Part shown: positions 3,532 through 51,076 of the stretch, one piece after another
How positions within the stretch are numbered: position 1 is the stretch's first letter
How the letters are laid out: each line of letters starts with the position of its first letter
Assembly (NCBI RefSeq): GCF_020745735.1
Contig: NW_026867601.1
Location: 62,001-126,000 of the forward strand
Length of the DNA stretch: 64,000 bases
From: Hemiscyllium ocellatum
Lineage: Eukaryota
Direction: 5' to 3'
Notes under the pieces: model-generated
What the model was told of the DNA's origin: nothing
The model's input: the letters and a program-made list of their open reading frames with translations, nothing else
The model's database searches: none
Translations under genes and position numbers: made by a program

Positions 3532-3840
3532 CCTGGGGTGTGGTGATGTTTTGACTTTGAGTGCTCTCTCCATGAGTGACCTGGCAGGTATACACTGCGC
3601 TGTTGAACCATTCACCATAAGGGACTGTCAGCCGACTCATCACCGAGAAGTTCCCATTCGCCTCACACACAGGAGACGTGAAGACAACAGAATCCACGGA
3701 TTGGCCATTTTTCAACCATGTCACGGAGATTTCCTTTGGATGGAAATCAGTGATTGAACAGACGATGGTTGCAAACTTGCTGCTTGCGATTTCTTCACTG
3801 GGACTCACGGTGAGAAGGAGAGTTGGCTGGAGACGTGAAC
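3532..3840 (-). CDS. IGHM: IgM Cmu2 exon
   Basis: Acceptor TTTTTCATGAAG|GT, donor CAGG|GTAAGG, 309 nt; [19 protein letters not shown]...YTCQVTH. Confidence 0.96.
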
Positions 3841-5897: not shown

Positions 5898-6197
5898 ATG
5901 GCATTCCAGTGCTCTGCTTTGACCCGCTGTGTTGAACCTCACAGGAGATGTTGCTGCAATCTGCTTCAGACTCAGGCAGGGTTAACTGGCTGCTCAGGGT
6001 GTAAGTTCCCTTCTTGTTTCTCACGGATGGATAAGTCTTCAATGCAGTCGTGATTGTCTCCCCACCTTTCTTCCAAGTCACGTTGGTAACGTCAGGGGAA
6101 TAGTCCATGGCCAAACAACCAAAGATCACAGAACCGTCAGCATTGTGTTGCTGACAGGAGGAGACAAGTCCATAAAGTGTGGGAGGAGATACAGTCT
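5898..6197 (-). CDS. IGHM: IgM Cmu1 exon
   Basis: Acceptor TTCTATCCTAG|AG, donor CCAT|GTAAGT, 300 nt; [11 protein letters not shown]...[13 protein letters not shown]...YTLSSQLTL...SCEVQH, typical shark Cmu1. Confidence 0.96.
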
Positions 6198-12990: not shown

Positions 12991-15233
12991 AAAATCTCCG
13001 ATTTTGTATCATTTGTTCCCATGGTGCGTTGATGATGGATTATTTTAATTAATTCGAAATCTAGTCTTGATGGCATTATCCACTTCAGCAGTTGTTACCG
13101 AATGGATGACTATTCCGTTGATATGTTGTTGCAAAATGTATCTATTTACTTAAAACACACGGATTGGGAACATCTAAAGCACTGCGTGGATTAAATCACT
13201 CAGTTAATGTTACATTATTATTCATGTAAATCTAATTTAAGCAAAGGTACAACAATTAATTATTTAAAGTTAAAATGAAAACCTGATCAATTCAGTGAAA
13301 GCAATCTACTCTGCATCGAAACATTTGGAGCAATGATCTTACTAGCAAGGAAACTTGTGTGTAGGGTACAGCGGAAATGAAAGAAAATTCTTCATTAATG
13401 ATATCACAGTAATGACACTTTTGCTCAATAACAAGAAAAAATAGAACATAATATTTCTGAAATTCTATTTATATTTCTTGAGACTTGCAAACTATTTGAA
13501 GACAGACTTTGCAATCTAAATAGAAAGTTGAGTTCTGTGTTTGGAATTTAAGGATTGGATTAGATTAGTCCTGAATTATTACTTTCAAATAAAAATCGCG
13601 CCCTAAGGTATCTGTTTTCCCTTCATTTCCAAACCCTTTGCGATTTGCCTTTCACTTAATATTAGCTTTATGAAAGTTCAACTCCAATGCTGATGGCATT
13701 GAATGTGGAAACTGCAGCGGTTCACTGTCACCAACCATGCAAATATTTCAAAAGCAATGTAGAGACTAAAAACAGCTTTACCAATATAACAAACTTAATT
13801 TTACCTAATCACATTCTCTCCTCAACTGAATAACGATTACCAAATCACAACACTGAGGATCAATGATGTGTTTGCAGCAAAACTGTTTTACTGCAAACAT
13901 TTTCAACAGAACCAAGAACATAATGTAACCTCACAAAAAAATCTCAAATTGTAATCCATCAAAGCTGCTCGCCATCACACAAGCGAATGATTAAAAATAG
14001 AAATAAAAAGTCATAACAGCTGCCATGGTTCTGAGATAACTTATTGAACAACACTTAAAGCTTTAAGATTTTCGACAACAACTCAATGTATTATCAACCC
14101 ACATAGTTTTTCTGAACATGTCAATCTTGTGCAGTGCACAGTAGAGCAGCTGAAGGCATCTATTGATTAATCGCCTTCAGGTCAAAATAAAATTAGTTCA
14201 ATGGACAAACATTGCTCCATTATAATTGAATGTTATGATAATTTAGTCTCAATTACGAAATCTGATCCATTTGGCAGTTTAAGATTTTAGACCCAAATTT
14301 TATTTTGAATGAGGCTACTCGAAACAGACTTTAACTCGTTTACAATTAGAACTGAGATGTATTTATTTAAAAAAAATACCCGAAAAAGTCGTCTTTTTTT
14401 TAAATTTCCAACACTTCCGTGTTTCTGCCTTAAGTTGGTCTTCAGACAGTTACAAACGGATATAGTGTTTTCAATCAGTCAGAAAAAAAGTATTGCCACG
14501 AGTTTAACAAATGCAGAAACGATTCAGTAAAAAGAACTTCACAAAAGAGACAATCTCTTTTACTGATAGAAAACACCAATTACTGAAAGTATGAAAACGC
14601 AGTTCAATTCCACAAGTTGAATCAACTCAATTCAACAGAATCAAATAAAGCAAAGTCAGAACCCAATCAACGTTTCAACAGAAGCAAATAAAACACATTC
14701 AGCATCCAATCAAAAGAATGAAATGTGGCACCGCAAGAAAAATTCATGGCAATATCTAACGTTCTTGCACTCAACAAAATTTACAAATTAAATGACAAAA
14801 TGCAATCTTGGTAAGAACATTATGTACACAGGGAATAAATCAATAATGATATTTTAGCATATATTGGTCCTGTCTGGTAATATTTCGTACATCTTTACGT
14901 CCTTAGCATTTGTTGTCGACAATAAAACTCACAGATAATGGGTGTTACTGACATTAAACATTGTTTAGACCACACTGATTAAGGTATGTCATGCAAACCA
15001 GCCACACAGAATGCACATCTGATTAAAACAAAAGATGCACTGAGCATCTGAATCCATCACCACCACTTTCATTACTTTCTGAGACTTAATGTAAGTCTAT
15101 TGTCAGTTTTAACATAAATCAAACGGAAACAAATCAAGGCTCAGCACAGACTCTGAGTTTCAGTTAATTCAGTAATTATTCACATGAGCAGAATGTTAAT
15201 AAAAAAAGACCCTAAGAAAGTTCACGTCCTTAC

Positions 15234-15281
15234 CTGAAGTCACCGTCACCATGGTCCCTTGACCCCAGTAACCAAGATAGT
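15234..15281 (-). CDS. IGHJ: JH gene segment (YLGYWGQGTMVTVTS)
   Basis: WGQG motif; donor TCAG|GTAAGG, phase 1, compatible with Cmu1. Confidence 0.97.
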
Positions 15282-15320
15282 CACAGCGGTCCATACCCTG
15301 GAGTGGGTAACACAATAACA
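15282..15320 (+). other. JH 23-bp-spacer RSS
   Basis: CACAGCG + 23 nt + ACAATAACA. Confidence 0.92.
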
Positions 15321-15655
15321 AATTCTGCATAAAAACAAACGAAATCCTGCTGTTATTTTAAATATTCGGAAACACTGTCAAAACGAAGTCACAATAAATC
15401 GTCATCACGTTATAATTGCACTGTTGGATATTGATCATTCTTCCTAAATAATTATAATGTTTTATACTTCACAGATATGAGGTGATTCTAAACATCACCA
15501 ACTGGTGCATCAGTAATTATCACCAATTTTACAAATTTAATTTACAATTTAAACCGTGATAATTGCACAATACCTCACAGAACTAACACCGAAATTCAAG
15601 TTTAGATAGTCTATACAGGTAAACATTGACTCGTTTCACGCAATGGGGCTGGACG

Positions 15656-15683
15656 GGTTTTTGTATTGGTCATAATTGCAGTG
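15656..15683 (-). other. D2 3' 12-bp-spacer RSS
   Basis: CACTGCA + 12 nt + ACAAAAACC (perfect nonamer, heptamer 4/7). Confidence 0.88.
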
Positions 15684-15697
15684 TCACCCCAGTATGT
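15684..15697 (-). CDS. DH segment D2 (ACATACTGGGGTGA)
   Basis: 14 nt flanked by two 12-spacer RSSs, lying between V and J as for shark D2. Confidence 0.9.
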
Positions 15698-15725
15698 CAC
15701 TATGAGACACATTGTGTCAAATATT
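15698..15725 (+). other. D2 5' 12-bp-spacer RSS
   Basis: CACTATG + 12 nt + TCAAATATT (degenerate nonamer, 5/9). Confidence 0.75.
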
Positions 15726-16034
15726 ACAGCGAGCTGCAAACTGTAAAATGCAGATATTTAATTTCATCAATTCCTGGATAGAAGTGATTCAGACTCCTCT
15801 AAAAATGATTTAGTGGAATATTTCAGCTTTTTCTATTCACTGTATTTTCAAAGCTCGGAATACTTTTGCAAGTTTAGCGTGCATTTAATGTGGTCATCAA
15901 CATGAGGAAAGTAGAATAATTTTATAAATTTGTCCAAACTAGTCAATACTGGATGGGATTCAAATTAGGTCTCACGTTATTTTCTCGGTCCTTCAATGGT
16001 AATAATCGCCAGCTTGAAATAAACCCTTGTCAGT

Positions 16035-16072
16035 GGTTTTTGTGTGAGGATGTCACTGTACACATCACTGTG
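16035..16072 (-). other. 22-bp-spacer RSS 3' of the fused V-D1
   Basis: Perfect CACAGTG (16072-16066) + 22 nt + perfect ACAAAAACC (16043-16035). Confidence 0.95.
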
Positions 16073-16390
16073 ACCCACTGTAGTAGTATCTTGCACAGTA
16101 ATAGATGGCGGTGTCTTCGATCTTCAGGTTTTCCATCTCCAACGCGAAGATGTTGTTTGATGTGTCTTTGGACGCAGTAAATCGATTCTTAATCGCTGGA
16201 GCATAGTTATTGCTGGATGAACTTTTGTATTGAAGCAGCCACTCCAGCCCCTGTCCGGGAACCTGACGGACCCAGCTCATCCAAGTATTGTCAAGATTGA
16301 AGCCGCTGGTTTTACAGGTCAGTTTCAGGGTGGCTCCGGGATGGCCACTTTCTGCTTTTGGTTGAGTTAAAACAATCTCGGACTGGACAC
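16073..16390 (-). CDS. IGHV: VH exon fused to a D1-like sequence (germline VD1)
   Basis: Acceptor TTTTAAAG|GT. Open frame [53 protein letters not shown]...[10 protein letters not shown], followed directly by TACTACTACAGTGGGT (YYYSG) and then the RSS. Confidence 0.95.
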
Positions 16391-16521: not shown

Positions 16522-16570
16522 ATGATAAGAACGTCAGTAGCAAACTGAGAAAAATTGTTGACTTAATCAT
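16522..16570 (-). CDS. IGHV: VH leader exon (MIKSTIFLSLLLTFLS)
   Basis: ATG at 16570, hydrophobic signal peptide, donor TCAT|GTGAGT, 131-nt intron to the V exon. Confidence 0.95.
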
Positions 16571-16656
16571 TCTGATAACTTGTGGAGAACGGTTCTGTCA
16601 AGAGCTCTCTAAACAAACCAGCTCCAGGAGTGTTGAACTAAAGCACAGTGACCCGG

Positions 16657-16663
16657 ATTTATA
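16657..16663 (-). promoter_or_regulatory. TATA box of VH promoter
   Basis: TATAAAT ~87 nt upstream of the leader ATG. Confidence 0.65.
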
Positions 16664-18543
16664 TGGCCAGTAGAAGGGGCAGGCTTACATGTTCTGCCTG
16701 TTGGTTTCCTGCTGGAGACTGAGACTGGATCCTTGTATCACCTTACACAGCCCTAAAAATTGTCGCATGTTTACACGAGGTTATTCTTAAACATGGAAAT
16801 ATACACACCTTGTGAAAATGTTTTGCTGATTAGCCTGCTAGGAAGTGTTTTTTGAATGGGGAAAGTGAAATTTAACAGCTTGAAGTATTTTTCAGATGAA
16901 TTTTCCAGATATTTTGTTTAAAACAACAAAACAAATTCAATTGAAAGTTATCTCCCTGTGTTCCAACATGCATTTAATAGTAAATAAAACTAAAATTAAA
17001 GTTCGAAGATATTATCAGCCAAATAATTAACTGGCAATACTTTTTACTGGACACTCCAAGTGTCCGCCACACTACAAAATAACTTGTAAATCGTACCAGA
17101 TGTTTCTAAATTCACTTTATGCAACTGAATACAGAGCGTGTACAAAGTGATTATGTATAGAATATTCAATTAGAAATTAATTCCGTTTAATTCTACGTTC
17201 AACCACAAGCAGTAAAAGCTAAAAGGAAGTTCAATATCATTGTCAGACAATACAATTACTGACTTTATTTCTGCAAGCACTCCAAGTTTCTCTCAAATTA
17301 CAAAATAAGGTATCATTTCTAATTGGCGTTCCTAAATTCAATTTAGGCAAGCTAATATCGAGCATGTCTAAAATGAATCTGTTTAGAATGTGTGTGTGTG
17401 TCACTAAACTGTTTAGACACGGAGATTAGAAGAACTTCCCCATATTACCGAATCTCTCTCCTTGTATCTTTTTTCAACATGAACCGACCAGAAGATAGAT
17501 ATTTGAAAATGGATAGTAAAGGAAAGCTGTGTGCCCTAGAAATAAAAAGTGAATTGACAATGAAACGTAACACTCAGATAAACCTTTGAAAGAGAATCTA
17601 ATAAAGTGGAGCAGGCCGGTCGAGAAGTTAGAAAATAATTCTCAACATTCAAACCATTGCAGGTAACTATTTGGGTACATCAGGAGTGTCTGGCAAGTTA
17701 CAGAGTATTACATCAATAATTGCCACGGATGTAGATCATAAGCAGCACATTTCTCCGCGCATTGGTAAGTGTGACACGGAACTGTCAACGAGTAGAAATC
17801 AGTGAAAACTATGCATTACACTTCACCGGTGCTCACTGTGTATAAATGCCCCACTCGGTTTTACTGAAATGCATTAATCAGAGAATGGTGCAACAGGTTA
17901 TGCGAGTTCAAGCCAATTCAAGTTTGTCAACTTACTTTGAGAAAATGACAAATGTTAGTACAATGTGGGAGTTTGGTTCCATTAAAGTCATATTCAAGGG
18001 CTTTAAAAGTCCTCAATACAAACGGTTTATTAACTATGCTGATCTTCAGCAGGAACTAATATAAATGTCTGTCATGCAGTCAATTTCCTGTTTCCTGATT
18101 GTCACACAGTGAATGTTATGTTGAGTGACCATCCTTGTTAAAGAAGAAATGCCAAGTGAAATGTGTCTATTTTGGGTAAAGTAGAAAATACAGTTTGTTT
18201 GGTGAGATTTTGTTTTAGTTGATTCATACTGCCTTAAATCTGCCAGATACAGTAGTTGGCAGCAATTAAGCCGACTGCAGAAATGGTTTGCGAGCTTCCA
18301 GTTTCATTTACCGGAAGCATCTGGAGTCTCTGCAGTAGATCAAAGATATTTTGTCTCACTGTTGACCACTTGCCAGAAAGCCAACATCAAACCATAACCA
18401 CTGCCTCGGCATTAATAAATCTACTCAGCAACAATGCTACAGAAAATATTATTTTTTAGCTGTGCAACTTGGAGAACTGGTCCCTTCTCTCATTAAAACA
18501 AATATTCAGAGTCTCAGACACAACATAAAAGTCAAGGTTGAAT

Positions 18544-20690: not shown

Positions 20691-21366
20691 CTTTGTTTAA
20701 TTCGAAGGCTGTAATTCATCTGATTTATATGGGAAATGTTTCAAACTTTCATTTCAATGATATCCCAAATCAATAAACACCACCTGACACACTGTCTAGT
20801 AATGAGGAAATTAATGGTCTAGTTAATGATCCCAAATGATGCCTGGCTTAACATCCCTTTATTCAAATAATGATTTGGAGATGCCGGTGTTGGACTGGAG
20901 TGTACAAAGTAAAAAAATTACACAACACTAGGTTATAGTTCAACAGGTTTATTTGGAAGCAGTATCCTTTGGAGCGCTGCTCCTTCATCAGGTGGAGTAC
21001 AAGATTGTAAGACACAGAATTTGCAGCAAAAGTTTACAATGTGATATAATTGAAATTAAATAATGAACTAGGTTGTCTTAAGTTTCTCATCTTTTAGAAT
21101 GAGCATGTTGGTTTCAGTTCTTTCATATGTAAATAGCAGAACATTTATAAAGTTACATTCTCAAGTGAACTTTAACAATTCGTGTCATGTTGGCCCAGAT
21201 AATTCATTTAAGTTGTGAGGTGTCCTCTGTGACACTGTCTGTGACACAATGTTCAGACTGATTCTAATCTAGAAAAAGGATTTACAGAATCTAACATAGA
21301 TTCATGCAGGTTTGGAGAAAAATTAAATGTAATTCTGCAAGTACAAATTAACCCCACAAATTTCTT

Positions 21367-21405
21367 TGTGTGTGTGTGTGTGTGTGTTTGGGGGGGGGGG
21401 GGGGG
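21367..21405. repeat. (GT)n microsatellite followed by a G16 run
   Basis: Read directly from the sequence. Confidence 0.9.
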
Positions 21406-21599
21406 AGGTTATGAGCGTTCTTGTGAGTGTGTGCGTATGTGTGTGTGTGAGTATAAACTGGTATAAGTCTGCCACAGGTTACATGTCTGACCATGTGAGT
21501 GTGGGAGTGTATGAGAGACATCTTGTGCATGAGAGGACCCGCATGGGTGTATTTGTAGGATCGCGTGTGTGTATGCAGGAGCGTGTCTAGGAATGTGTG

Positions 21600-22513
21600 T
21601 GGCTCTGTCTATGTTTAAAATCTGATTGAAGATTTGTAGCTCGGGTATCCGTTGTTGTGGTTCTGCTCGCCGAGCTGGAAGTTTTTGCTGCAAACGTTTC
21701 GTTCCCTGGCTAGGGAACATCATCAGTGCGGTGGGAGCCTCGTGTGAAGCGCTGCTTTGATGTTTCTTCCGGTATTTATATTGGTTTGTTCTTGCCGCTT
21801 CCGGGTGTCAGTTTCAGCTGCAGTGATTTGTATGTGGGGTCCAGGTCGATGTGTCTGTTGATGGATGTTCTTGCCGCTTCCGGGTGTCAGTTTCAGCTGT
21901 AGTGGTTTGTATATGGTGTCCAGGTCAATGTGTCTATTGATGGAGTTTGGGGATGAATGCCATGCTTCTAGGAATTCTCTGGCTGTTCTCTGTCTGGCTT
22001 GTCCTATGATAGTGGTGTTTTCCCAGTCAAATTCATGTTGCTGGTTGTCTGAGTGTATGGCTACTAGAGATAGCTGGTCGTGTCGTTTTGTGGCTAGCTG
22101 ATGTTCGTGGATGCGGATTGTTAGCTGTCTTCCTGTTTGTCCTATATAGTGTTTTGTGCAGTCCTTGCATGGTATTTTGTAAACTACGTTAGTTTGGCTC
22201 ATGCTGGGTATTGGGTCCTTTGTTCTAGTGAGTTGTTGTCTGAGCGTGGATGTTGGCTTGTGTGCTGTTATGAGTCCTAAGGGTCGCAGTAGTCTGGCTG
22301 TCAGTTCTGAGACACTCCTGACGTATGGTAGAGTGGCTAGTCCTTTTGGTTGTGGCATGTCCTCGTTCCGTGGTCTATCTCTTAGGCATCTGGTGATAAA
22401 GTTGCGTGGGTATCCGTTTTTGGCGAATACCTTGTATAGATGTTCCTCTTCCTCTTTTCGCAGTTCTGGTGTACTGCAGTGTGTTGTGGCCCTTTTGAAT
22501 AGTGTCCTGAGTA
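21600..22513 (-). mobile_element. Penelope-like element family B (Poseidon-like; RT C-terminus plus GIY-YIG, frame still open)
   Basis: ...NGYPRNFI...LPYVRSVSELTARLLR...NVVYKIPCKDCTKHYIGQTGRQLTIRIHEH...REFLEAW; ~80-bp direct duplication near the 3' end (21789 vs 21868). Confidence 0.92.
21690..21729 (-). ncRNA. minimal type I hammerhead ribozyme motif in the PLE-B 3' end
   Basis: GCA-CUGAUGA-U-GUUCCC(UAGCCA)GGGAAC-GAAAC-GUU-UGC: intact core, 6-bp stem II, 3-bp stem I, palindromic AAACGUUU helix III. Confidence 0.75.
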
Positions 22514-22559
22514 CATGAGTCTGTATGTGTGCGCATGTCTGTATCTGGGTGTATGCCTG

Positions 22560-22596
<37 letters not shown>

Positions 22597-22929
22597 TGCA
22601 GTGAGGTCACCTGTAGTGTCACATGAACCCAAAGTCCCGGTTGAGCCAATCCCCACAGGTACCGAACTTGGCTATCAGCCTCTGCTCAGCCACTTTGCTT
22701 TGGTGCCCATCCCGAAGTTCACCTTGGAGGACGATCACTCGAAGATCCAAGGTCGAATATCCTGGACCACTGAAGGGTTCACCGTCTGGAAGGGAACACT
22801 CCTGACTGTTAATTGTTGTGCGGTGTCCATTCATATGTTGCAGTCGCTTCTGCTCATTCCCGCCAAAGTACCATGCTGCATAGCTTCCTTGCCTACAGTG
22901 TATGAGATAGACAACGTTGGATGAGTCAC

Positions 22930-24220
22930 ATGCGTTCACACACAAAGAGAGAAAACCAGATACACACCCAGACACAGACACACAGACACACACACACAGA
23001 CACACACACACACACACACACACTCCTACTTGAGGAAAGACATTCTGGCTATTGAGGGAGTGCAGCGTAGGTTCACGAGGTCAATTCCCAGAATGGGGGG
23101 ACTGTCTTACGCTGAAAGATTGGAGCGACTGGGCTTGTATACGCTTGAGTTCAGAAGGCTGAGAGGGGATCTGATTGAGACGTATAAGAATATTAAAGGA
23201 TTGGACACTCTGGAGACAGGAAGCATGTTTACGCTGACGGGTGAGTCACGAACCAGAGGACACAGTTTTAAAATAAGGAGTAGGCCACTTAGCACTGAGT
23301 TGAGGAGAAATTTCTTCACCCAGAGAGTGGCGGGTGTATAGAATGTTCTGCCCCAGAAGGCTGTGGAGGCCAAGTCTCTAGATACTTTCAAGAAAGAGAT
23401 GGATAGAGCTCCTAAGGATAGTGGAATCAAGGGTTATGGAGATAAGGCAGGAACAGGATACTGATTGAGGATGATCAGCCATGATCACAATGAATGGTGG
23501 TGCTGGCTCGAAGGGCAGAATGGCCCACTCCTGCACCTATTGTCTATTGTCTATTGTCTAATACTCGCACGGGCCCTCTCATAACACAAGCTCTCTCTCA
23601 TACTCTCACACGTACACTCCCACATGCACATGCATCCACTCACAGACTTATACCCCTTTCCACTCACACTCATATTTACACACATATGCACACTCTCTCA
23701 CACTGTCCACCCTTCGTGACACACACACACAACCACAAAGAAGTTTGTGAGTTGAATTTATACTTGCAGTATTAAATTATGTTTTGCTCAAACATTGCCT
23801 GAATCCATGTAAGATTCTGTAAATCAGTTACTTTTTAAGATTAGAATCAGTCTGAATATTGTCTCATGGACAGTCTCGCACAGGGCACCTCACACCTTCA
23901 CTGCATTATCTAGGCCGACATGACACCAATTGTTAAAGTTCACAGGAGAATGTAACTTTGAAAAGTTCTGCGATTTACATATGAAAGAATTGAAACCAAT
24001 ATGATCATTCTTAAAGATGAGAGACTTAGTAAACATTCCAGGTATTTTTCATTACATAATTTCAATTATATCACACTGTAACCTTTTGCTATAAATTCTG
24101 TGTCTTGCAATCTTATACTGCACAACCATCTGATAAAGGAGCTGTGCTCTGAAAACTAGTGCTTCCAAATAAGATTTGTTGGACTACACCCTGGAGCTGT
24201 GTGATTTTTAAGTTTATTCA
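22930..24220 (+). mobile_element. inverted copy of the PLE-A 3' region/tail, interrupted by a CR1
   Basis: 23570-24220 is the reverse complement of ~20900-21590 (~75-80% identity by eye); (CA)n start at 22930-23025. Confidence 0.75.
23030..23560 (+). mobile_element. 5'-truncated CR1 LINE
   Basis: RKDILAIEGVQRRFTR...LERLGLYTLEFRRLRGDLIETYK...FFTQRV; (CTATTGT)n tail. Confidence 0.93.
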
Positions 24221-25054
24221 ACTAAGGTCAATAAATTAAAATAACAAAGTGAAAGGCACACACCGTACATTTAGGCAGATCAGCCAGTTTCATGTCTCAG
24301 TAGACACAATTAAAATTCAGAACATTGCAGTGAAGAAAGATGAGCCCTCATAACATTGGAAATTATTTTTTTGATAAAATAATTCATTGTTGTCATGCTT
24401 AGAGTAATTCCTTCGAACCAACTTGCTTTTTTTTTACAGGGTAACACACGAGATGTTACTTTAATCCAATTGATGTGAACCATTTACACGTCAAAGGTTA
24501 TTTGAAAACGTTCTTCATAACTGACATTCCAGCAAAGTTTAGAAATTATAGATCAAAATGGGCAGTTGCTTTTTTTTCGACTCAAGGAAGATCCATAGTG
24601 ATGGTTTGCAGGTGGAAGTGTTTGGACCTGTGACTGTTTTCATTTATTGTTTTGACTAAGCTCTTGGCAAACAATGAACAGCTTCACAAGTTGCTATAAC
24701 ACGAACCTACCAACCAGTGGGATCCAGGAAGATGCGAATACAAAATTTAGTAAGGACCGAGCGAGGTTTGCAGATGGGACAACAAGTGACAATGACATTC
24801 AGCACAGGGATTCTTGACGTAATTAATTTAACGAGGAAGGACACAGAAACACAAATTCATGTCTCTGTTTGCATTTCCATAAACTATAAATTACTTTTCT
24901 ATTATATTCTAAAATACTGGTCTTTGTCTGTTTGTAGTTGATACACCATGTCTTCACCTGGGCTAAGAAACTTCCTTTATTTATTGAATATAAGACTCTA
25001 TCTAAAATACGCTGTACTTTCTCTCAGTAGTGACCCAACTCGGTCTCGAACAGA

Positions 25055-25400
25055 TATTTAACCTCATCTAGCCCCACATACCAGCACTTAGCCTATATCC
25101 CTCTAAAACCTTCCTACTCGTGTAATCATCCAGATTCCTTTTAAATGTTGCAATTGTACCAGCCTCCACCACTTTCTCTGGCAGTTCAATCCATGCACGT
25201 ACCACCCTTTGCATTAAAACGTGTTCCCTTAGGACTCTTCTATATCTTACTCCTCTCACCCTAAATCTCCCTCTCCCGATCCCCAGGGAAACCACCTTGT
25301 GTATTTATCGTATCCATGCTCCTCATTATTTTATAAACTTCTATAAGATCACCCCTAAGCTTCCAAATCTTCAAGGAAAACAGCCCCAGCCGAATCATCC
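25055..25400 (-). mobile_element. CR1 3' fragment
   Basis: WIELPEKVVEAGTIATFKRNLD remnant. Confidence 0.8.
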
Positions 25401-25409
25401 CACTCCTCA

Positions 25410-26935
25410 GAATCTATTTGTCTCCCTACACACCAAATCCCCCTCCACACTTCACTGAATCTGCATGTCTCCTCATCCCCACACCCAAGGCTCTGCGTGT
25501 CTCCCTCACCACACCCCCAACACAACACAGTCCGACTCCCACAGTCTGAGTGACTCCCTCCCCACACGTCCACATCTCCAGTTCCCAGAGTTCGAGTTTC
25601 TCCCACACTGCACACCCACATTCCCACTCCCCAGATTCTGTGCTTCACCCTCCCCGACACCCACATTCCAACTCCCAGAGTCTGTGTGTCTTCCTCCATC
25701 CACGCCCCCATTCCCCGTCCCAAGAGTTTGAGTTTCTCCAAACCCCACACCCCCAACCCACTCCCAGAGTCTGCGTGTCTCCCTTCCCCTCATAGTCACA
25801 CCCCTTCTCCCCAGCATCGAAGTTTGTCTCTCACCCCACACCCCAAACTACACTTCCCGAATCTGTATGGCTCCCCCACACCCGACTCACAGCAATCCCC
25901 ATTACCAGAGTCTCTATGGCTTCTGTCCCCGCCCATACACACACACCATCAAACTCCCAGAGACTGAAGGCTTCCCTCTCTCCACGACCCCATTTCCAGC
26001 TCCCAGAGTTTCCCAGAGTGTGTTTCTCCAACACCACCTCATTCCCACTCCCCAGAGTCTGTGTGTCTCCTTTCTCCCACACCCCATCCCTACTCCCAGA
26101 GTCTGTGGGTCTCACTTCATCCCCACAACGCCATCCCCACTCCCCGAGTCCGTGCATCTCCCTCCCCAACACCTCCAATCCCTCTCCCAGAGTCCGTGTG
26201 TCTCCTTCCTCCCACACCCCCTTCCTCGCTCCCAGAGTCTGTGTGTCTCCCTTCACTCCCACATCCCCATCCCCACTCCAGAGTCTGTGCGTCTCCCTAC
26301 CACCACACCTCTAACCCCACTCCTAGAGTCTGTTGTCAAAATCCCACAACATCTCCATCCCCACTCTCAGAGTCTGTGTGTTTCTCGCCCCCATCTTTAA
26401 TCCCAGAGTCCGTGTGATTCCCTCCTCCTACACCCAACTCCCCACTCCAGTGTCTATGCATCTCTTCACCCATGCTCATCCCAACTTCCATAGTCTGTGT
26501 ATCTTCCTCCCGCAACATCTCCACCCCCTTGCAGAGTCTATGTGTTTCCCTCTCCCTCACACACCCATCCCCACTCCCAAGGTCTGTGAGTCTCCCTCCC
26601 TCTACACCACCATTTCCACTCCTAGAGTCTGTGTGTCTCCCTGTCCCCCACTGCCCCACCCCCACTCCCTGGGTTTCTCTGTCTCCCTCCACTCCCCATT
26701 CCCCATCCCCACTCCCAGAATCTGTGTGCTCCCCTTTACCCCACAACCCCATTCCCACTCGGTAGAGTGTGTTTATCACCCTCCCCACACACCCCCATCC
26801 TGACTCCCAAAGACTATGTCTCCCTCTCCCCCCACACTGCCATTTGCACTCCCGGAGTCTGTGTGTCTCCCTGGTCCACACATCTCCATCCCCACTCCCT
26901 AGAGTTTGTGCTTCTCCATCCACACCTCCCCACAC
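25410..26935. repeat. C-rich (+) / G-rich (-) minisatellite with variable-length units
   Basis: Recurring CCCCACTCCCAGAGTCTGTGTGTCTCCC motif with pyrimidine-rich linkers. Confidence 0.9.
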
Positions 26936-29689
26936 TGCTGAAGGCTGCAGAATATAGAATCTAAAACCGATTTTTTTAAAAAAACTTTATCATAAGAAAA
27001 AGTAACAAAAAGTGCAAGATCAGAAATATTAAAAGGTACAGTTGAAGTGCTCCAGATTTTGAGAATTCAATGATCTTGTTAGATGGTTTGGAGATTCATC
27101 CAACAACGTCCTGGAGTCAGACTGTTAAACCGAGTTCGAAGGTTGATTTGTAAATGTTACATCAACGTGATTGCATACCGCCCCATGAACTTGTTTCCAG
27201 ATATAGGCCACATTGGCAGATGTTTCCTCAGACTGTTTCCCCCGGGTATTTATTTTCTGGTCAGAAGTGAAATGGGTGGCACACAGAAACAGGAAGTTTT
27301 GGGTCAGCTGAGAATGACACACCGGGCAACAATTCCCTGTTATCAGTGCAAGCAGTCTTCCTGCCTGTGGGGGTGAACACACACTGACAGCATCAAAACC
27401 AAATAGGCAGATTACGGTTGGTTTCAACATTGTATTCAATTCCATTCTCAGTTTCCACAATGAAACATAAAACACCCAAGATTATTTAAGCTAAATTACA
27501 TTAACTGTCCGCTGAGAGTTATCACTGGGCGAAACAGGCCAAAGGACAAGTAATAATTTCATTTGCAATTCTCTGTTTAAACCTTTCACAAACTTCGGCG
27601 ATATCTCAGGTCAAAGCAAGAAGAGATTGTATCAATGCACAGGTATTTCTACCTTGTACCTATCTTCAGTCATATTTTGCTGTTCTCTTTTTGCTTTCAT
27701 TCATGTAAGATATCAAGAACAAATTTAAGATTTCAGTAAGCGAATCACAGGTGAGGTTCTGGTGGACTGGACATGTTGATTCCGCTTGCACAAGAAGGGT
27801 AGTAGGGATATTCCAGAGCTTGACGTCAGTGCTGGGAAAGTGCTGGAGAATGTACTGAGGGATGAAATCCATTTACCTTTGGAAAAGAATAGGATTATCA
27901 GTGATAGACAATGTGGTTTTGTATGGGGGAGATTGTGCCTTGCCAATTTAGTAGAGTTGTTGAGGAAGTGACCAAATAGATAGATGAAGGAAAGGCTGGC
28001 ACGGTAGATTCATTTAGGGTGCGTCTGAACAGATACATGAGGAGGATACAGATTCTTAGGAATTGAGTGATAGGTTTAGATAGTGAATTTGGATCTGCAC
28101 ACGCTTGGACGGCGGAAGGGACTGTTCCTGGGATGTTAATTTACTTTGTTCATTGTTCTTCCTTGTGTAGTAATGGACATTAAAGTAGATATTTCAGAAT
28201 ATGCCGCAGAGATCATTTCTGCAGTGTAAGAAAACAAAACCTAAGGAAAGCAATCACAATCCCTGTTTCAAAATAAAATACTGGAACCAAACTGAGAATA
28301 AATCTATATTGTTGCACACTGATAGGGGGTAGACCTGAAGATTTGACAGATATAGGAAAGTGGAAGAATATAAGTTTAATAAGGAAACAAGTATCAGACT
28401 AAAAGTTAGAGTTAGCTAGTTAGATTAAATAGACAGAGACATTACTGACAGGTTTTAAAATATAATTAACAATATGGAGGTTGGTGTTGTGGACAGTGAG
28501 TCAGTGAAACTAGCAACAAAAAGGAAATGGTCAATTCATTGTATAGGTACATTGCGACAGCCCTCTACATCAAAAATAGGTGGAAAATCAGGAAAACCAA
28601 AGAAGGTTGAGATAGAATTGAAATTACAATCGCCGCTCAAGCGTTCCTGATAAAATAGTTATAGCCTGGATAAGGGTTCAAATTCATGCTCGGAATATTC
28701 ACAGAAAACTGACTCACAAAATGTTTCATGCATTAGTTTTTAGTTTCCAAAATCAGGGAATGTTCTATGCGATTGCAAAATTGTGAATTGAAATCCTTCA
28801 TTAAAAGGGGCAGATACAGAAAGCAGAAGTTATTTGACAGTTAAGTCAGCTTCTGGCATAAGGAGTAAGATAGAAACTATTATCAGGAACGGTCAAGTTA
28901 ATCAGATGGAATCAATATGACTTTGTAATGTCAACATCATGCCTGCAGTTCATTGCAGATTTCTGACGACTTTGAGCGTGTGCAGTTGATAAAGGAACAG
29001 CAGTTCATGTAATGTATTTAGATACAGGAGTCATTGAAACATAAAAAATATGGACCAAGAGTAGGCTATACACATCACGAGCTTGTCCTGTGATTCAATA
29101 CAATCAGGGCTAATAAAAGTCCAGTGAACTTTCACAACACTCCCTCCATGGTGACAACAGCTTTCCAGACATAAGGAAAACTTAATTGCACTCCGTTCAC
29201 CAATTGTAGTCTAGCCAAACTCCTATGCAACTAAAGCAACACTTCATTGCTCCAGCGTTCAAATTATCCTGTAGTAAGGGCTAACATTCTATTAATCTTC
29301 CAAATGTGTATTGAATAAAGGGTCACATCAAACATTTTTCTGGTGGATAATTAAACAACTCATCGGAGGGGTAGGATATTTCTATCGTTCCTGATGGAGA
29401 GCACAACACATCAGTGTAAAAGTTAAGGCTGAAGCATTCACAGCAATCTATCGTCAGAAATGCCAATTGTACGATCCATCTCGGCTTCGTCCGATTATCA
29501 GCAATATTACCGATTCATGTTTTCAGCCAATTTGCTTCTCTCCACGTGATAACAAGACATTCTGGGAAGCTCTGCTTACTCAAACGTTATGTAGCCGACA
29601 AAAGTACTGATGGTTTTAGCGAGGCAAGCACTTCCAGCGTAGCTGCAACGATGGCAAAAATCCAACAACATGTGAAATAGTTGAATAGT

Positions 29690-31914: not shown

Positions 31915-33480
31915 CATAGTGTCATAGCGATGTCCAGCGTGGAAACAGACCCTTTGGTCAGACTCGTCCATGCAGAACAAATATCCCAACCCAATCTAAT
32001 CCCACCTGCCAGCACCCGGCCCATATCCCTCCAAACCCTTCCTATTCATAAATCTCGTTAGATGCCTTTTAAATGTTGCAATTGTACCAGCTTCCATCAC
32101 TTCCTGTGGCAACTCATTCCATATATGTACCACACTTTACGTGAAATAATTGCCCCTTAGGTCCCTTTTACATCTTTCCCCTCTCACCCTAAACCTACGC
32201 CATCTAGTTCTGGACTCACCCACCCAGGGAAAAAACTTTCCCTATTTATCCTATCCATGCCCCGCATGATTTTATAAACCTCGATGAGGTCACCCCTCAG
32301 CATCTGAAGCTCCAGGGAGAACAACCATAACCTATTCAATCTCTCCCTGTAGCTCAAATCCTCTAAACTTGGCAACATCCTTGTAAATCTTTTTTGAACA
32401 TTTTTGATGTTTCACAATATCCTTCCTAAAGAAAGGAGACCAGAATTGCATTAAATATTCCAACCGTGACCCTAATCAATGTCCTGTACAGTTGCAACAT
32501 GACCTCTCAACACCCTTACCAATAAAGGAAAGCATACCAATTGCCTTCTTCACAATCGTATCGAACTTGCGACTATACGTTCAAGGCGCTATGAAACTGC
32601 ACTCAAAGGTCTCTTTGCTCAGCAACGCTATCTAAGACCTTGCCATTAAGTGTATAAGTCCTGCTAAGATTTGCTTTCCCACAATGCAGCACCTCGCATT
32701 TACCTGAATTAAAATCCAACTGTCACTCCTCAGCCCATTGTCCCATCTGATCAAGATCCCATTGAAACCTGAGATAAGCTTCTTCATTGTCCACTACATA
32801 TCCAATAATGGTGTCATTTGCAAACTTACTAACTATGCCTCTTATGCTCGCATCCAAATCATTTATATCAATGATTAAAATTACTGGACCCAGCACCGAT
32901 CCTTGTGGCACTCCACTGGTCACAGGCCTCCAGTCTGAAAAACATCCCTCCACCACCATCATCTGTCTTCTACCTTTGAGCCAGTTCTGTATCCACATGG
33001 TTAGTTCTGCCTCTATTCTGTGAGATCTTACCTTGCTAACCAATCTCCCTTGGGGAACCTTGTTGAACGACTTACTGAATTCCATATAGATCACGTCCAC
33101 TGCTCTAGTCTCAAAAATCCTCTTGGTAACTTCTTCAAAAAACTCAATCACGTTTGTGAGACATGATCTCCCACGCATAAAGCCATGTTGTAGATCCCGA
33201 GTCAGTCCTTACCTTTCCAAGTGCATGTACATCCTGTAACTCATAATTCCCTCCAAAGTCCTTCCCACCACCAACGTCACGCTCACTGTTCTATAGTTCC
33301 CTGACTTGTCCTTACCATTTCATAAACAGTGGATCCACGTCAGCCAACCTCCAATCTTCCAGCACCTCACCTGTGACTATTAATTACACAAATGCCTCAG
33401 CAAGAGGACCAGCAATCACTTCACTAGGGTCCCACAGAGTTCGAACCTACACATGATCAGGTCCTGGGGATTTATCCACA
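31915..33480 (-). mobile_element. CR1 LINE 3' half, RT pseudogene (paralog 61215-62790)
   Basis: GRSCLTNVIEFFEEVT...VDVIYMEFSKSFNKVP...VTSGVPQGSVLGP..FANDT. Confidence 0.93.
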
Positions 33481-40892: not shown

Positions 40893-42757
40893 TAAGGATG
40901 GAAATAAAATAAGGGAACCTGAGGGCCAACAGTTACACACTAAGACTGTTCAGCAAATGGAATGAGCTGCCAGTGGAATTGGTGAGGAGAAACATTAACA
41001 ATATTTAAAAGGTATTTGGACAAATACATGCACAGGAATGATTCAGAAAGATAAAGGGCCAAGTGCAGGGAAATAAGATAATCGTGGAAGGATAATTTGG
41101 TTGGTATGGATCAGTTTAGGCCGAAGCCCTGTCTCTGTGATGTGCAACTCTCACACTCTCGGACACAAATCAGATACCAGAAATGTTGGAGAATGCAAAT
41201 TTTACTGAGTGGGGGAACTGAGGCTGATCAATATTAGTGAAGAAATGTTGCTTTGATAATTGCGGGGATGGACGGTGGATCAACCCACAGGGCCTGATAA
41301 TCTACGTCCAAGCGTACTTCACAAAGTGGTTCCAGCAATAGATAATGCATTCACTGCCAGGATTGTCTACATTCCGATACAGTCCCTGCAGACTGGAGAG
41401 CAGCTGATATCACTCGAATATTAAAAAATGGAGACATTGTCTTTGTTTTCTCTATAATCCTGTATTTTCCTGCGGTAGTTCGGAGTTCTACTGAGACTCT
41501 CTTCGGGCGGAGTGTGTCCCCATGATACATGGTACAATAAACTGATTAATACTCAAGGTCTGCCTGCAGTGATTTTCTACAGCAGCGCGGGTGTTTAATT
41601 ATGTAACTGCATATACATTTCTGTGTCTATTGCCATGTAAGCACATCATATTGCCATGAAACCACTTTGGGTGTCAGAGGTCACCGGCATGCTCTCGTCG
41701 TTGGAAGATGCTCACGTGTATTTCAGATAATGTGCTTTCATGCAATGCAGCTTTCCTGCTTGATGAAGCGATGGTATACTAGCCTTCATAGTGAGGGGTT
41801 GAGTCCAGGAGCAGGGATGTGTTGTCGCCTTGGTGAGGCCACACCTCCAATATTGTATGCCGTTTTGGTCTCCTTTTCTGAGGAATGTATTATCTATCCT
41901 GTCTAGTCCTGTTAAGATTTTATAAGTCTCTATGAGATTCCTTCCTCATCCGTCTGAACTCGGGAGGAAACAATCCTAACGCATTTAATCTTTCCTCATA
42001 CGTCAGCCCCACCATCCCCGGAACCAGCCTGGTAACCCTTCACTGCACTCCCTCAAGAGCAAGACCATATTATTCTTCATCATTCTTGAAGCAGATCCTT
42101 TGCCTGACTGTAGAAAATCTCACCATGCAGAAAGTAAATTCACAAGTCACATGCATCCATTCCGCACTCATGCCCAGGCACACTTGTTTGATCATTTAGG
42201 GACTCTGCATTTGAGAGGACGCAGAATGTGCGAATTTGTAACGTCACCTCCAAATCTCAGCATAGCAACTGGGATACTCTCGTCCACATCTCAATTACAC
42301 CCAACATGTCTTTCACTCCTCCCTCTTCACCTTCCAGGGCTGTATAATTCCTTGCAAGCACATCTGTGCCTCTCGGTTGTCCAGACTGAAATAAAGAGTA
42401 TTGTTGTGACAAGATCTGCTGTTGGAATTGCTGAGGGAACTCAGCAGGAGCGGCAGTGCCTGAGGGAGGAAACGGAATTCTCATAAAGTTCCGTAGGAAT
42501 TCTAAAACGGAGTCTCCGATTCTCTCTCCGCAGATGCGGCCAGACCGGATGATTTTTTGTTTTCCTGCAGTTTCTGCTTTTGCTTTTAGCTGAATGTCTA
42601 TTCCATTGACCGGAATGATACACCCAGACACACCATGTACCGATATTTATATCTTTCAAAAACTGAGGCAATTGAATTCAAACAAATGCAGAACGATGCT
42701 CTTCCCTCAGCTCCACAGACAGAGGAACTCGGGAAAGCAGCGGCGTGACATGATTCT

Positions 42758-42834
42758 ATAGGTATAGCTGAGTGACTGCACTTATAAACAGGCAATCCCG
42801 TTTCTTATTGCGGTGTCGAATCCTGCTGCCGGTG
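42758..42834 (+). pseudogene. tRNA-shaped relic (also 46580-46656, 50398-50474)
   Basis: A-box-like TAGCTGAGTG, T-arm-like GCGGT-GTCGAAT-CCTGC, acceptor-like ATAGGTA/TGCCGGT (6/7 pairs including G-U); anticodon arm not recognisable. Confidence 0.35.
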
Positions 42835-42973
42835 GCTGAAAGCACAGCAAGAGGGAGTTTGTTTCGCATCTCTGTGTTTGGGATTCCAATCCCGGCGGGA
42901 AAACACTTCTTCCAGGTCAGAAGTGGTGTCAATCTCCAATGCACTCCCTGAACAGCTCGGATTCACCCGTGCA

Positions 42974-43096
42974 CCCTGATGAAGGGCTTATGCCCGAAAC
43001 GTCGAATTTCCCATTCCTTGGATGCTGCCTGACCTGCTGTGCTTTAACCAGCAACACATTTTCAGCTGTGATCTCCAGCATCTGCAGACCTCATTT
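42974..43096 (+). mobile_element. 123-bp PLE-tail insertion with hammerhead core and 12-bp TSD (also 46796-46918; partly deleted at 50614-50651)
   Basis: TTCACCCGTGCA at 42962-42973 and 43097-43108; insert starts CC-CTGATGA-A-GGGC-TTAT-GCCC-GAAAC-GTC. Confidence 0.8.
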
Positions 43097-43491
43097 TTCA
43101 CCCGTGCATTGCCAGCTTTGTTCGAATTGGTGTGTTTCCAGATTCCTGACTAGAGTTTTCTCGCTGAATTTGTTCAAGGCATTGACTGGAATAGACCATG
43201 ATTCAATGTATGAAAGTACATTTCACTGGGGTGGAACCTAAACCCGCAAAGTGACTGTGAATAAAACAATGGAAACTCTCAGCACAGGAACAAGAGACAC
43301 TGAAGCAGACACATGAGGACAAATATCTTTTCTCTGTCAGTGAAAGGCGCTGCTTCACAAAGGGGAGACTTCGAGGTGAAGCAGTGACGGTGATAATTTC
43401 TGCTGATGATTCACCCGATGATTGCCGTTTCTGACCGAAGTCCGTGTTTACATTACATACTGACAACCTGTCAGTTTCGCACCCGTGATTG

Positions 43492-43564
43492 AGGCCAGTA
43501 GCGTAATGGATAACGCGTCTGACTTCGGATCCGAAGATTGTAGGTTCGAGTCCTACCTGTCTTG
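43492..43564 (+). tRNA. tRNA-Arg-TCG: tRNA-Arg(TCG), two stem mismatches (C4-T69, T29-C41); function doubtful
   Basis: 73-nt cloverleaf, anticodon TCG at 43525-43527, intact GGTTCGAGTCC B box. Confidence 0.8.
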
Positions 43565-44008
43565 GGTCCGTGGCGCTCTTTATTGCGCATGCTTCCTGTT
43601 GCATTGCCATTTCTGACTTGTTTGGAGATGCTGGCATTGGATTCGTGCGTTTGTGAATTTGAAAGTTGCATTTCAGACCGTTGCAGCTCATTCTCACACC
43701 GGTGTATGTCAGCTCCTGATTTTACACTATGTGAGCAGCTGCTGGGATGAGAACCGCGTGTTCCATAGCCCTTGAATTCTTGTGACATCAAGAATTTATC
43801 AATCTCTGCCTTGAAGACATTTAGCGTCCCGGCCTCCACTGCACTCTGTGACAATGAATTCCACAGGCCCACCACTCTCTGGCTGAAGAAATGTCTCCGC
43901 ATTTCTATTCTGAATTGACCCTCCCTAATTTTAAGGCTGCGTCCACGAGTCCTAGTCTCAGGACTACAAGGAGTCAGTCTCATGTTTGGATGGAAATGAT
44001 ATAAGGAA

Positions 44009-44736
44009 ATGGAGTACTGGGCTAATGGTCGGATACCTGGTAGTGTGGATGAGCAGTGGGATCTTGGTGTCCATGTACACAGATCTCTGAAAATTGCCAC
44101 CCAGGTAAATAGTGCTGTGAAGAGGCATATGGTGTACTGGCTTTTATCGGTAGAGGAATTGAGTTCCGGAGTCCTGAGGTCATGTTGCAGTTGTATAAGA
44201 CTCTGGTGCAGCCGCATCTGGAGTATTGTGTGCAGTTTTGGTCGCCATACTATAGGAAGGATGTGAAGGCACTGGAACGGGTGCAGAAGAGGTTTACCAG
44301 GATGTTGCCTGGTATGGTAGGAAGATCGTATGAGGAAAGATTGAGGCACTTGGGGGTGATTTCATTGGAGAAAAGAAGGTTTAGGGGTGACTTGATAGAG
44401 GTGTGCAAGATGATTAGGGGTTTAGATAGGGTTGACCATAAGAACCTTTTTCCACGTATGGAGTCAGATATTACGCGGGAGCATAGCTTTAAATTAATGG
44501 TGGTAACTATAGGACTGATGTTAGGAGTAGATTCTTTACTCAGCGAGTCATGAGTTCATGGAATGTCCTGCCAGTAACAGTGGTGGACTCTCCCTCTTTA
44601 TGGGCATTTAAACGGGCATTGGATAGGCATATGGAGGATAGTGGACTAGTGTAGGTTAGGTGGGCTTGGATCGACGCAACACCGAGGGCCGAAGGGTCTG
44701 TACTGTGCTGTATTTTTCTATGTTCTATGTTCTATG
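44009..44736 (+). mobile_element. 5'-truncated CR1 (identical-position copy 47831-48558; remnant 51211-51473)
   Basis: MLQLYKTLVQPHLEYCVQFWSP...LEKRRFRGDLIEV; (TTCTATG)n tail. Confidence 0.93.
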
Positions 44737-47313
44737 AAACCTGAGGGCCAACTTTTATACACTAAGACCGATAAGCATATAGAATGAGCAGCCAGTGGAA
44801 GTGGTTGAGGGAGAAACATTAACAATATTTAAAAGGTATTTGGACAAATACATGCACAGGAATTGTTCAGAAGGATAAAGGGCCAAGTGCAGGGAAATAA
44901 GATTATCGTGGAAGGATAATTTGGTTGGCATGGATCAGTTTGAGCCAAAGCCCTGTCTCTGTGATGTGCAACTCTCACACTCTCGGACACAAATCAGATA
45001 CCAGAAATGTTGGAGAATGCAAATTTACTGAGTGGGGTAACTGAGGCTGATCAATATTAGTGAAGAAATGTTGCTTTGATAATTGCGGGGATGGACGGTG
45101 GATCAACCCACAGGGCCTGATAATCTACATCCAAGCGTACTTCACAAAGTGGTTCCAGCAATAGATAATGCATTCACTGCCAGGATTGTCTACATTCCGA
45201 TACAGTCCCTGCAGACTGGAGAGCAGCTGATATCACTCGAATATTAAAAAATGGAGACATTGTCTTTGTTTTCTCTATAATCCTGTAATTTCCTGCGGTA
45301 GTACCGAGTTCTACTGAGACTCTCTTCGGGCGGAGTGTGTCCCCATGATGCATGGTACAATAAACTGATTAATACTCAAGGTCTGCCTGCAGTGATTTTC
45401 TACAGCAGAGCGTGTGTTTAATTATGTGACTGCATATACATTTCTGTGTCTATTGCCATGTAAGCACATCATATTGCCTTGAAACCACTTTGGGTGTCAG
45501 AGGTCACCGGCATGCTCTCGTCGTTGGAAGATGCTCACGTGTATTTCAGATAATGTGCTTTCATGCAATGCAGCTTTCCTGCTTCATGAAGAGATGGTAT
45601 ACTAGCCTTCATTGTGAGAGGTTGAGTGCAGGAGCAGGGATGTGTTGGCGCCTTGGTGAGGCCACACCTCCAATATCGTATGCCGTTTTGGTCTCCTTTT
45701 CTGAGGAATGTATTATCTATCCTGTCTAGTCATGTTAAGATTTTATAAGTCTCTATGAGATTCCTTCCTCATCCGTCTGAACTCGGGAGGAAACAATCCT
45801 AACGCAGTTAATCTCTCCTCATACGTCAGCCCCACCATCCCCTGAACCAGCCTGGTAACCCTTCACTGCACTCCCTCAAGAGCAAGACCATATTATTCTT
45901 CATCATTCTTGAAGCAGATCCTTTGCCTGACTGTAGAAATCTCACCATGCAGAAAGTAAATTCACAAGTCACATGCATCCATTCCGCACTCATGCCCAGG
46001 CACACTTGTTTGATAATTTAGGGACTCTGCAATTGAGAGGACGCAGAATGTGCGAATTTGTAACGTCACCTCCAAACCTCAGCATAGCAACTGGGATACT
46101 CTCGTCCACATCTCAATTACACCCAACATGTCTTTCACTCCTCCCTCTTCACCTTCCAGGGCTGTATAATTCCTTGCAAGCGCATCTGTGCACCTCGGTT
46201 GTCCAGACTGAAAGAAAGAGTATTGTTGTGACAAGATCTGCTGTTGGAATTGCTGAGGGAACTCAGCAGGAGCGGCAGTGCCTGAGGGAGGAAACGGAAT
46301 TCTCATAAATTTCCGGAGAAATTCTGAAACGGAGTCTCTGATTCTCTCTCCACAGATGCGGCCAGACCGGATGATTTTTTGTTTTCCTGCAGTTTCTGCT
46401 TTTGCTTTTAGCTGAATGTCTATTCCATTGACCGGAATGATACACCCAGACACACCATGTACCGATATTTATATCTTTCAAAAACTGAGGCAATTGAATT
46501 CAAACAAATGCAGAACGATGCTCTTCCCTCAGCTCCACAGACAGAGGAACTCGGGAAAGCAGCGGCGTGACATGGTTCTATAGGTATAGCTGAGTGATTG
46601 CACTTATAAACAGGCAATCCCGTTTCTTATTGCGGTGTCGAATCCTGCTGCCGGTGGCTGAAAGCACAGCAAGAGGGAGTTTGTTTCGCATCTCTGTGTT
46701 TGGGATTCCAATCCCGGCGGGAAAACACTTCTTCCAGGTCAGAAGTGGCGTCAATCTCCAATGCACTCCCTGAACAGCTCGGATTCACCCGTGCACCCTG
46801 ATGAAGGGCTTATGCCCGAAACGTCGAATTTCCTATTCCTTGGATGCTGCCTGACCTGCTGTGCTTTAACCAGCAACACATTTTCAGCTGTGATCTCCAG
46901 CATCTGCAGACCTCATTTTTCACCCGTGCATTGCCAGCTTTGTGTGAATTGGTGTGTTTCCAGATTCCTGACTAGAGTTTTCTCGCTGAATTTGGTCAAG
47001 GCATTGACTGGAATAGACCATGATTCAATGTATGAAAGTACATTTCACTGGGGTGGAACCTAAAACCGCATAGTGACTGGGAATAAAACAATGGAAACTC
47101 TCAGCACAGGAACAAGAGACACTGAAGCAGACACATGAGGACAAATATCTTTTCTCTGTCAGTGAAAGGCGCTGCTTCACAAAGGGGAGACTTCGAGGTG
47201 AAGCAGTGACGGTGATAATTTCTGCTGATTATTCACCCGATGAAGGCCGTTTCTGACCGAAGTCCGTGTTTACATTACATACTGACAACCTGTCAACGCG
47301 ACGCCAGCGGTTG

Positions 47314-47386
47314 GGGCGAGTAGCGTAATGGATAACGTGTCTGACTTCGGATCAGAAGATTGTCGGTTTGAGTCCTACCTGGCTCG
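47314..47386 (+). pseudogene. tRNA-Arg-TCG: tRNA-Arg(TCG) probable pseudogene
   Basis: Anticodon TCG at 47347-47349, but B-box C56>T (GGTTTGA), T-stem mismatch (GTCGG/CCTAC) and acceptor G5-G68 mismatch. Confidence 0.8.
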
Positions 47387-51003: not shown

Positions 51004-51076
51004 GGGCCAGTAGCGTAATGGATAACGCGTCTGACTTCTGATCAGAAGATTGTAGGTTCGAGTCCTACCTGGCTCG
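51004..51076 (+). tRNA. tRNA-Arg-TCT: tRNA-Arg(TCT), intronless, perfect cloverleaf
   Basis: GGGCCAG/CTGGCTC, GCGT/ACGC, TCTGA/TCAGA and GTAGG/CCTAC all pair; anticodon TCT at 51037-51039; TTTATT 15 nt downstream. Confidence 0.88.

Follow-up and report, generated by a model that had tools for sequence, protein, structure and literature searches.

A putative germline V-D1 join in an IgM heavy-chain cluster of Hemiscyllium ocellatum

In a 64,000-nt stretch of Hemiscyllium ocellatum DNA (GCF_020745735.1, contig NW_026867601.1, positions 62,001-126,000, forward strand; hereafter the window, from whose first letter all positions are counted), we found an IgM heavy-chain cluster in which V runs directly into D1, with D2 and J standing apart behind recombination signals of their own. 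We interpret this as an intact IgM cluster that carries a V-D1 join in the germline and in which D2 and J have not rearranged, and we put the probability of this reading at about 0.85. A preliminary description, made from the letters of the window, had proposed the same arrangement. Our follow-up supports it through the identity of D1, the homology of the signal behind it to the D1 3' signal of unjoined clusters, and read contigs that cross the junction at single-copy depth.

Layout of the cluster

The gene is a cartilaginous-fish IgM heavy-chain cluster, with a split leader, a V-set domain, four C1-set exons, and a mu-type tail. This shark-type minilocus occupies ~16 kb of the minus strand, on which all features below lie, in the order VD1 - D2 - J - C-mu1-4, and its V is the only one in the 64-kb window. 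Leader exon 1 (16522-16570, ATG at 16570-16568) is 49 nt long with a GT donor and is followed by a 131-nt intron. The V part of exon 2, comprising the end of the leader and VH through ...YYCAR, covers 16089-16390 (Pfam V-set, E=6e-18). It has an AG acceptor and an open frame (EIVLTQ...IYYCAR), and it shares 93% nucleotide identity with a V gene of Chiloscyllium punctatum. The promoter region is conserved between the window gene and its paralogues, and no perfect copy of the promoter octamer ATGCAAAT is present at 16,600-17,000.

Two separate segments lie between the fused V-D1 and the constant exons. The free D2, ACATACTGGGGTGA (15684-15697), is homologous to the D2 ATATAACTGGGGTGA of the C. 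punctatum cluster L005. It is preceded by a 5' signal (15698-15725) made up of the nonamer AATATTTGA, a 12-bp spacer, and the heptamer CATAGTG, and is followed by a 3' signal (15656-15683) made up of CACTGCA, a 12-bp spacer, and ACAAAAACC. The JH segment (...YWGQGTMVTVTS; 15234-15281) carries a GT donor and is preceded by a signal of nonamer, 23-bp spacer, and heptamer (15282-15320; CACAGCG read from the coding border). D2 is located 375 bp downstream of the fused V-D1, and J is 402 bp beyond D2. With spacers of 22/12/12/23 and all segments in one orientation, the layout is as in L005.

The constant region comprises C-mu exon 1 (5898-6197; Pfam C1-set, E=1.5e-14), which is in frame, exon 2 (3532-3840; E=9e-22), exon 3 (1392-1700; E=1.8e-10), and exon 4 (541-932; E=2e-22), which also encodes the secretory tail and a stop codon overlapped by AATAAA. 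The tail is mu-type, and the C-termini of solved IgM mu chains align with it. A GGTAAA donor for transmembrane exons lies within CH4, and those exons would sit past the start of the window. J and CH1-4 together form 452 codons with a single stop, at the end. Splice sites are canonical (AG/GT) in all exons and the reading frame is open throughout, so that the leader, splice sites, frame, and four C exons are, as first described, intact by Pfam domains, AG/GT sites, and open frame. A search of plasmid DNA, which has no bearing on this genome, returned nothing.

The V-D1 junction and its germline status

At the junction, the V frame ...IYYCAR continues as TAC TAC TAC AGT GGG T, ends at 16073, and is followed directly by CACAGTG. 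The first TAC (16086-16088) precedes the D1 coding sequence TACTACAGTGGGT (16073-16085), which is fused in frame to V. Behind it lies the D1 3' signal (16035-16072), with its heptamer at 16072-16066, a 22-bp spacer, and the nonamer ACAAAAACC at 16043-16035. YYCAR, TAC, and TACTACAGTGGGT thus lead without a break into a perfect signal (heptamer, 22-bp spacer, nonamer; 16072-16035), as the preliminary description had it. With up to two mismatches allowed, this is the single heptamer-22-nonamer arrangement in the 64-kb window, where chance would give 0.09. No V signal, V-D1 intersegment DNA, or D1 5' signal was found at the junction, and one free D (12/12) lies before J, again in agreement with the earlier reading.

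A protein search with the V region led to V genes of C. punctatum (brownbanded bamboo shark), whose DNA we then compared with the window. In two unjoined clusters of this species, L002 and L005, V ends GCAAGAGAC and has a signal of its own, made up of heptamer, 23-bp spacer (AGAGGA...), and nonamer. After roughly 350 bp there is a 12-bp-spacer signal, then D1, and then a signal of CACAGTG, 22-bp spacer, and nonamer, the last being ACAAAAACC in L002 and ACAATAACC in L005; the flank behind it starts ACTGACAAG in both. The free D1 of L002 is ATACTACAGTGGGT, and the window's TACTACAGTGGGT is identical to it at 13/13 bases, in keeping with the resemblance to shark D1 sequences noted in the preliminary description. 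The signal behind the window D1 is homologous to the D1 3' signal by several measures: 17/22 bases of its spacer are identical to the D1 3' spacer of L002 and L005 (manual count), its nonamer is identical to the D1 3' nonamer of L002, and its flank (ACTGACAAGGGTTTAT...) is near-identical. By contrast, this 22-bp-spacer signal shows no similarity to the V signal.

By BLAST, the window is colinear with the unjoined clusters as far as the end of V; colinearity resumes at D1 and extends to J, and a clean gap of ~358 bp separates the two stretches. Both breakpoints fall 0-1 nt from heptamer borders, and the V signal and D1 5' signal are removed whole. The V end is untrimmed or nearly so, and D1 lacks 1 nt. 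We rejected the idea that the excised DNA had moved elsewhere in the window, as the ~358 bp V-D1 interval of the unjoined C. punctatum clusters has no match, and hence no copy, anywhere in the 64 kb. Paralogues in the window organism and in C. punctatum retain a V signal and a separate D1. This speaks against a state, raised in the preliminary description as grounds for abandoning the join, in which all paralogous V genes end this way with a single D.

The same comparison bears on the extra TAC, for which N addition or slippage had been suggested. A paralogue contig from the same organism matches the window V through 16086 and then continues with CACAGCG AGAGGAACCAGGGCTG, a V-type signal; this V end was seen as a loose end at 16086 in samples X1 and X5. 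That paralogous V ends GCAAGATAC before its heptamer, and the C. punctatum V genes end GCAAGAGAC. Because the same-organism paralogue ends GCAAGATAC, the TAC is most simply read as the V's own terminal codon, and neither N addition nor slippage is needed. Alignment to unjoined paralogues, as the preliminary description had suggested, then defines the joined ends: V would be untrimmed (AGA TAC), D1 would lack its first base, and no N or P nucleotides are apparent. An untrimmed V joined to D1 without N bases fits the germline joins of nurse shark, in which there is little sign of TdT (PMC2193156).

We examined the junction in three coded samples (X1, X2, and X5) from two studies, for which tissue and individual are not given. 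The junction and its signal are mismatch-free in contigs from each (X1, 15816-16115; X2, 15782-16115; X5, 14900-16115), and the X5 sequence is a single contig at depth 34.7, which starts below J and extends across D2 as far as the end of V. Depth at the junction is 10.6 in X1 and 9.1 in X2 (~6 in the adjoining contig), which is comparable to single-copy flanks in both samples, and the junction contigs are unbranched. All end at 16115, in FR3 sequence common to paralogues, and hence cover 27 nt of V. An unjoined allele sharing the DNA downstream of D1 would break contigs at D1, and no such break was seen. With high confidence, these reads point to a V-D1 join that is germline.

How the join arose can be proposed from the ends that it left. 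The ancestral cluster would have had the usual form, V(23)...(12)D1(22)...(12)D2(12)...(23)J, from which a recombinase-type event in the germ line would have excised the signal of V, the 5' signal of D1, and the spacer DNA between them, and nothing else. The untrimmed V end (...AGA TAC) would then have been joined to D1 minus one base, apparently without N nucleotides, to give a fused exon that retains the D1 3' signal and its 22-bp spacer. The excision is precise enough to make a role for RAG a reasonable inference. RAG-type joining with little N addition has been described in shark germ cells, and full excision of signals at heptamer borders has itself been used as an argument for RAG (PMC2193156).

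Three other accounts of the junction have to be weighed against a germline join by recombinase. It could be a somatic partial rearrangement or an assembly artefact, given that a somatic VD-D-J intermediate is documented in nurse-shark lymphocytes (PMC2435157) and that the sequenced DNA comes without a stated tissue of origin. However, a polyclonal somatic junction could not attain full depth, and here the junction is mismatch-free in three samples and two studies, is covered as deeply as the single-copy DNA on its flanks, and is not confined to the minority of reads that the preliminary description had named as telling against it. Because depth is at flank level and there is no alternative path, including any branch to an unjoined form sharing the D1-downstream DNA, we consider a somatic or artefactual origin highly improbable. 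An ordinary deletion, by replication slippage or end joining, might instead have taken out the V-D1 interval. This would accord with the missing D1 base and the absence of a P or N signature; still, a deletion of this kind would have had to place both breakpoints within 0-1 nt of heptamer borders and to take both signals wholly, and we judge it improbable. Least credible of all is the notion that fused V-D1 is the ancestral, never-split state from which split clusters derive. It is a historical alternative discussed in PMC2193156, and nothing specific to the window favors it, whereas the V tree nests the window gene among other configurations, split ones included, and a free D1 with a 5' signal of its own matches the window D1 and its signal by identity or homology.

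The nearest relative and known joined clusters

In a tree built from leader, intron, and V, the window gene pairs with the C. punctatum sequence BEZZ01138472 (L001, a 988-bp contig) with support of 100/99. Identity to L001 is 92%, compared to 80-87% for other V genes. Non-coding identity between the two is 90-92%, and within V, pS is 0.143 and pN 0.044 (pN/pS ~0.31), a ratio that, on small counts, indicates purifying selection on V.

L001 likewise lacks a V-D1 interval and has the D1 3' signal and flank as in the window. At L001:917-988, however, ...TGTGCAAGA (GCAAGA) abuts CACAGTG, a 22-bp spacer, and ACAAAAACC with no D1 bases in between, so that the 16 bases of TAC plus D1 in the window are absent. 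In effect, L001 appears to be a V that acquired the D1 signal, and it would make a one-D cluster. We offer, as a tentative and rather unlikely history, a single old V-D1 join under purifying selection, from which L001 lost precisely TAC and D1, as far as the border of the heptamer, when recombinase acted in the germ line a second time. Such a loss could be explained if the D1 3' signal was cut, the coding end was resected, and what was left was ligated back to that signal. The product would again be a V with a signal of its own, and the cluster would have gone from two D segments to one; if true, repeated germline RAG activity would be a route for altering D-segment number. Another possibility is that two independent events struck sister genes. 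Homologous deletion from heptamer to heptamer is a less likely source of the D1-less L001 because L001 is also without the last three V bases of unjoined V genes.

Several other clusters examined alongside the window show rearranged or reduced segments. Two from C. punctatum, L003 (3440-3510) and L004 (4670-4735), are germline VDD-J, in which the fused V, D1 remnants, and D2 stand in front of a D2 3' signal (CACTGCA, 12-bp spacer, nonamer). The otherwise unjoined L002 (4280-4340) has been left with the 5' half of D2 and has lost the D2 3' signal and, by our reading, ~190 bp of the DNA between D2 and J; it probably cannot complete a VDJ. In a whale-shark gene (Rhincodon typus NC_063338, L006:10465-10545), V, D, and J are joined in the germline (…CARDWGGSLHYWGQET…) and a splice donor follows; the J motif of this gene is WGQET, not WGQGT.

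Partly and fully germline-joined Ig clusters have long been known in cartilaginous fish and are credited to recombinase acting in germ cells (PMC2193156, PMC5192425, PMC4279169, PMC8355894). The window cluster belongs to this known class of partly joined shark clusters, and the phenomenon is not new. Configurations named in reviews are VD-J, VD-DJ, and VDJ (PMC5192425, PMC4279169). Germline VD-D-J is not among the configurations in those two papers, which are reviews and not the original horn-shark or skate descriptions, and in the papers searched, VD-D-J occurs only as a somatic intermediate of nurse shark (PMC2435157). With the VD-J and VD-DJ clusters, the window gene has in common an IgM minilocus, an inherited coding joint, precise excision, and remaining segments that are flanked by signals. 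It differs from them in having the first join alone, that of V to D1, with two signal pairs left. The architecture is identical to that of the nurse-shark somatic VD-D-J, with V fused to D1 and both D2 and J free. That form, however, arises in lymphocytes and thymocytes as one of three products of a single rearrangement (PMC2435157), whereas the window junction is found at germline depth in three samples.

Two further nurse-shark systems offer partial parallels. The NS4 light-chain genes (PMC2193156), like the window gene, are joined among split genes, with signals excised and little or no N addition, but they are light-chain VJ joins that complete the gene, while the window holds a partial heavy-chain join. 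The IgM1gj gene (PMC5192425, PMC4279169) is likewise an IgM heavy chain with germline-fixed CDR3 content; unlike the window gene, with its four C exons and two joins yet to be made, it is fully VDJ-joined and without C-mu2.

By itself, the window cluster leaves existing knowledge unchanged. It would nevertheless provide a cleanly bounded case of recombinase activity in the germ line, with the ancestral segments readable from unjoined paralogues, and it appears intermediate between the hard-wired VDJ genes of shark pups and fully rearranging clusters. Outside the cartilaginous fish, an opossum VH that is partially germline-joined is reportedly recombined and transcribed, according to the title of Wang and Miller 2012, cited in PMC8355894. 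Compared by title, that gene is also partially joined, but it lies in a mammalian translocon locus.

Expected rearrangement, expression, and the rest of the window

Under the 12/23 rule, VD1 (22) would rearrange to the D2 5' signal (12) and the D2 3' signal (12) to J (23), and a direct join of VD1 to J would be disallowed. Given the 12/23 signals that are left, a B-cell precursor would need two joins and not three. CDR3 would have a fixed start, CAR-YYYSG, in the Tyr-rich frame of D1, leaving two diversified junctions instead of three.

All four remaining signals keep the CAC triad and correct spacer lengths. The D2 3' heptamer CACTGCA is also found in L003, L004, and L005 of C. punctatum and, because it is common to these three, can be taken as the family norm. 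The D2 5' heptamer (15698-15704) is different: it reads CATAGTG, or CACTATG from the coding border, compared to CACAGTG in paralogues of the same organism, in a contig of a related species, and in C. punctatum, and in reads the change is represented by a variant at 15702 and a loose end at 15692. The D2 5' signal is weaker than that of the paralogues, with 5/9 nonamer positions matched, and the derived heptamer change may lower its efficiency.

Among the RNA runs of the window organism that we searched, none contains the gene. Run X9 of a related species, probably RNA, contains many different V-to-J joints of the window V's family, which are not assignable to the window cluster. Two joints that we read through use D1 in the same YYSG frame as the window gene, and one contig matches the window V's CDR1, NLDNTW, apart from three changes typical of the C. 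punctatum sister. We also observed an X9 contig (depth ~118) over window positions 15663-15848, which spans the unrearranged D2, both of its signals, and intersegment DNA; it may represent a sterile germline transcript or DNA in the library.

The window gene may be functional, and its continued function is a reasonable inference. It could alternatively be a silent or decaying relic that is not rearranging or not expressed. The lack of the gene in the RNA runs of the window organism would fit such a relic, as would the derived CATAGTG in place of the paralogues' CACAGTG. There are also precedents: joined H-chain genes of horn shark were reportedly not detectably expressed in adults (PMC2193156), and clusters of this kind can decay, as in C. 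punctatum L002, which is without the D2 3' half and signal. Yet every exon of the window gene is open with canonical splice sites, the four remaining signals keep their CAC triad and spacer lengths, V shows a pN/pS of ~0.31 against its nearest relative, and V transcripts of orthologous or nearest type occur in the probable RNA run X9. On balance, we regard a silent relic as unlikely, though with a chance well above that of the other alternatives to our reading of the junction.

Elsewhere in the window, at 21300-27000 and 50900-52800, both strands contain long open frames with a high content of Pro, His, Thr, and Ser, together with TG/CA-type simple repeats; these frames look like low-complexity repeat arrays and not genes. 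A unit of ~3.8 kb is present three times at 41600-50300; its open frames at 41607, 45430, and ~49300, for instance, are almost identical. The fragments at 32726-33208 and 62040-62522 resemble retroelement reverse transcriptase, and what appears to be a segmental duplication comprises 29.4-34.8 kb and 57.4-64 kb.
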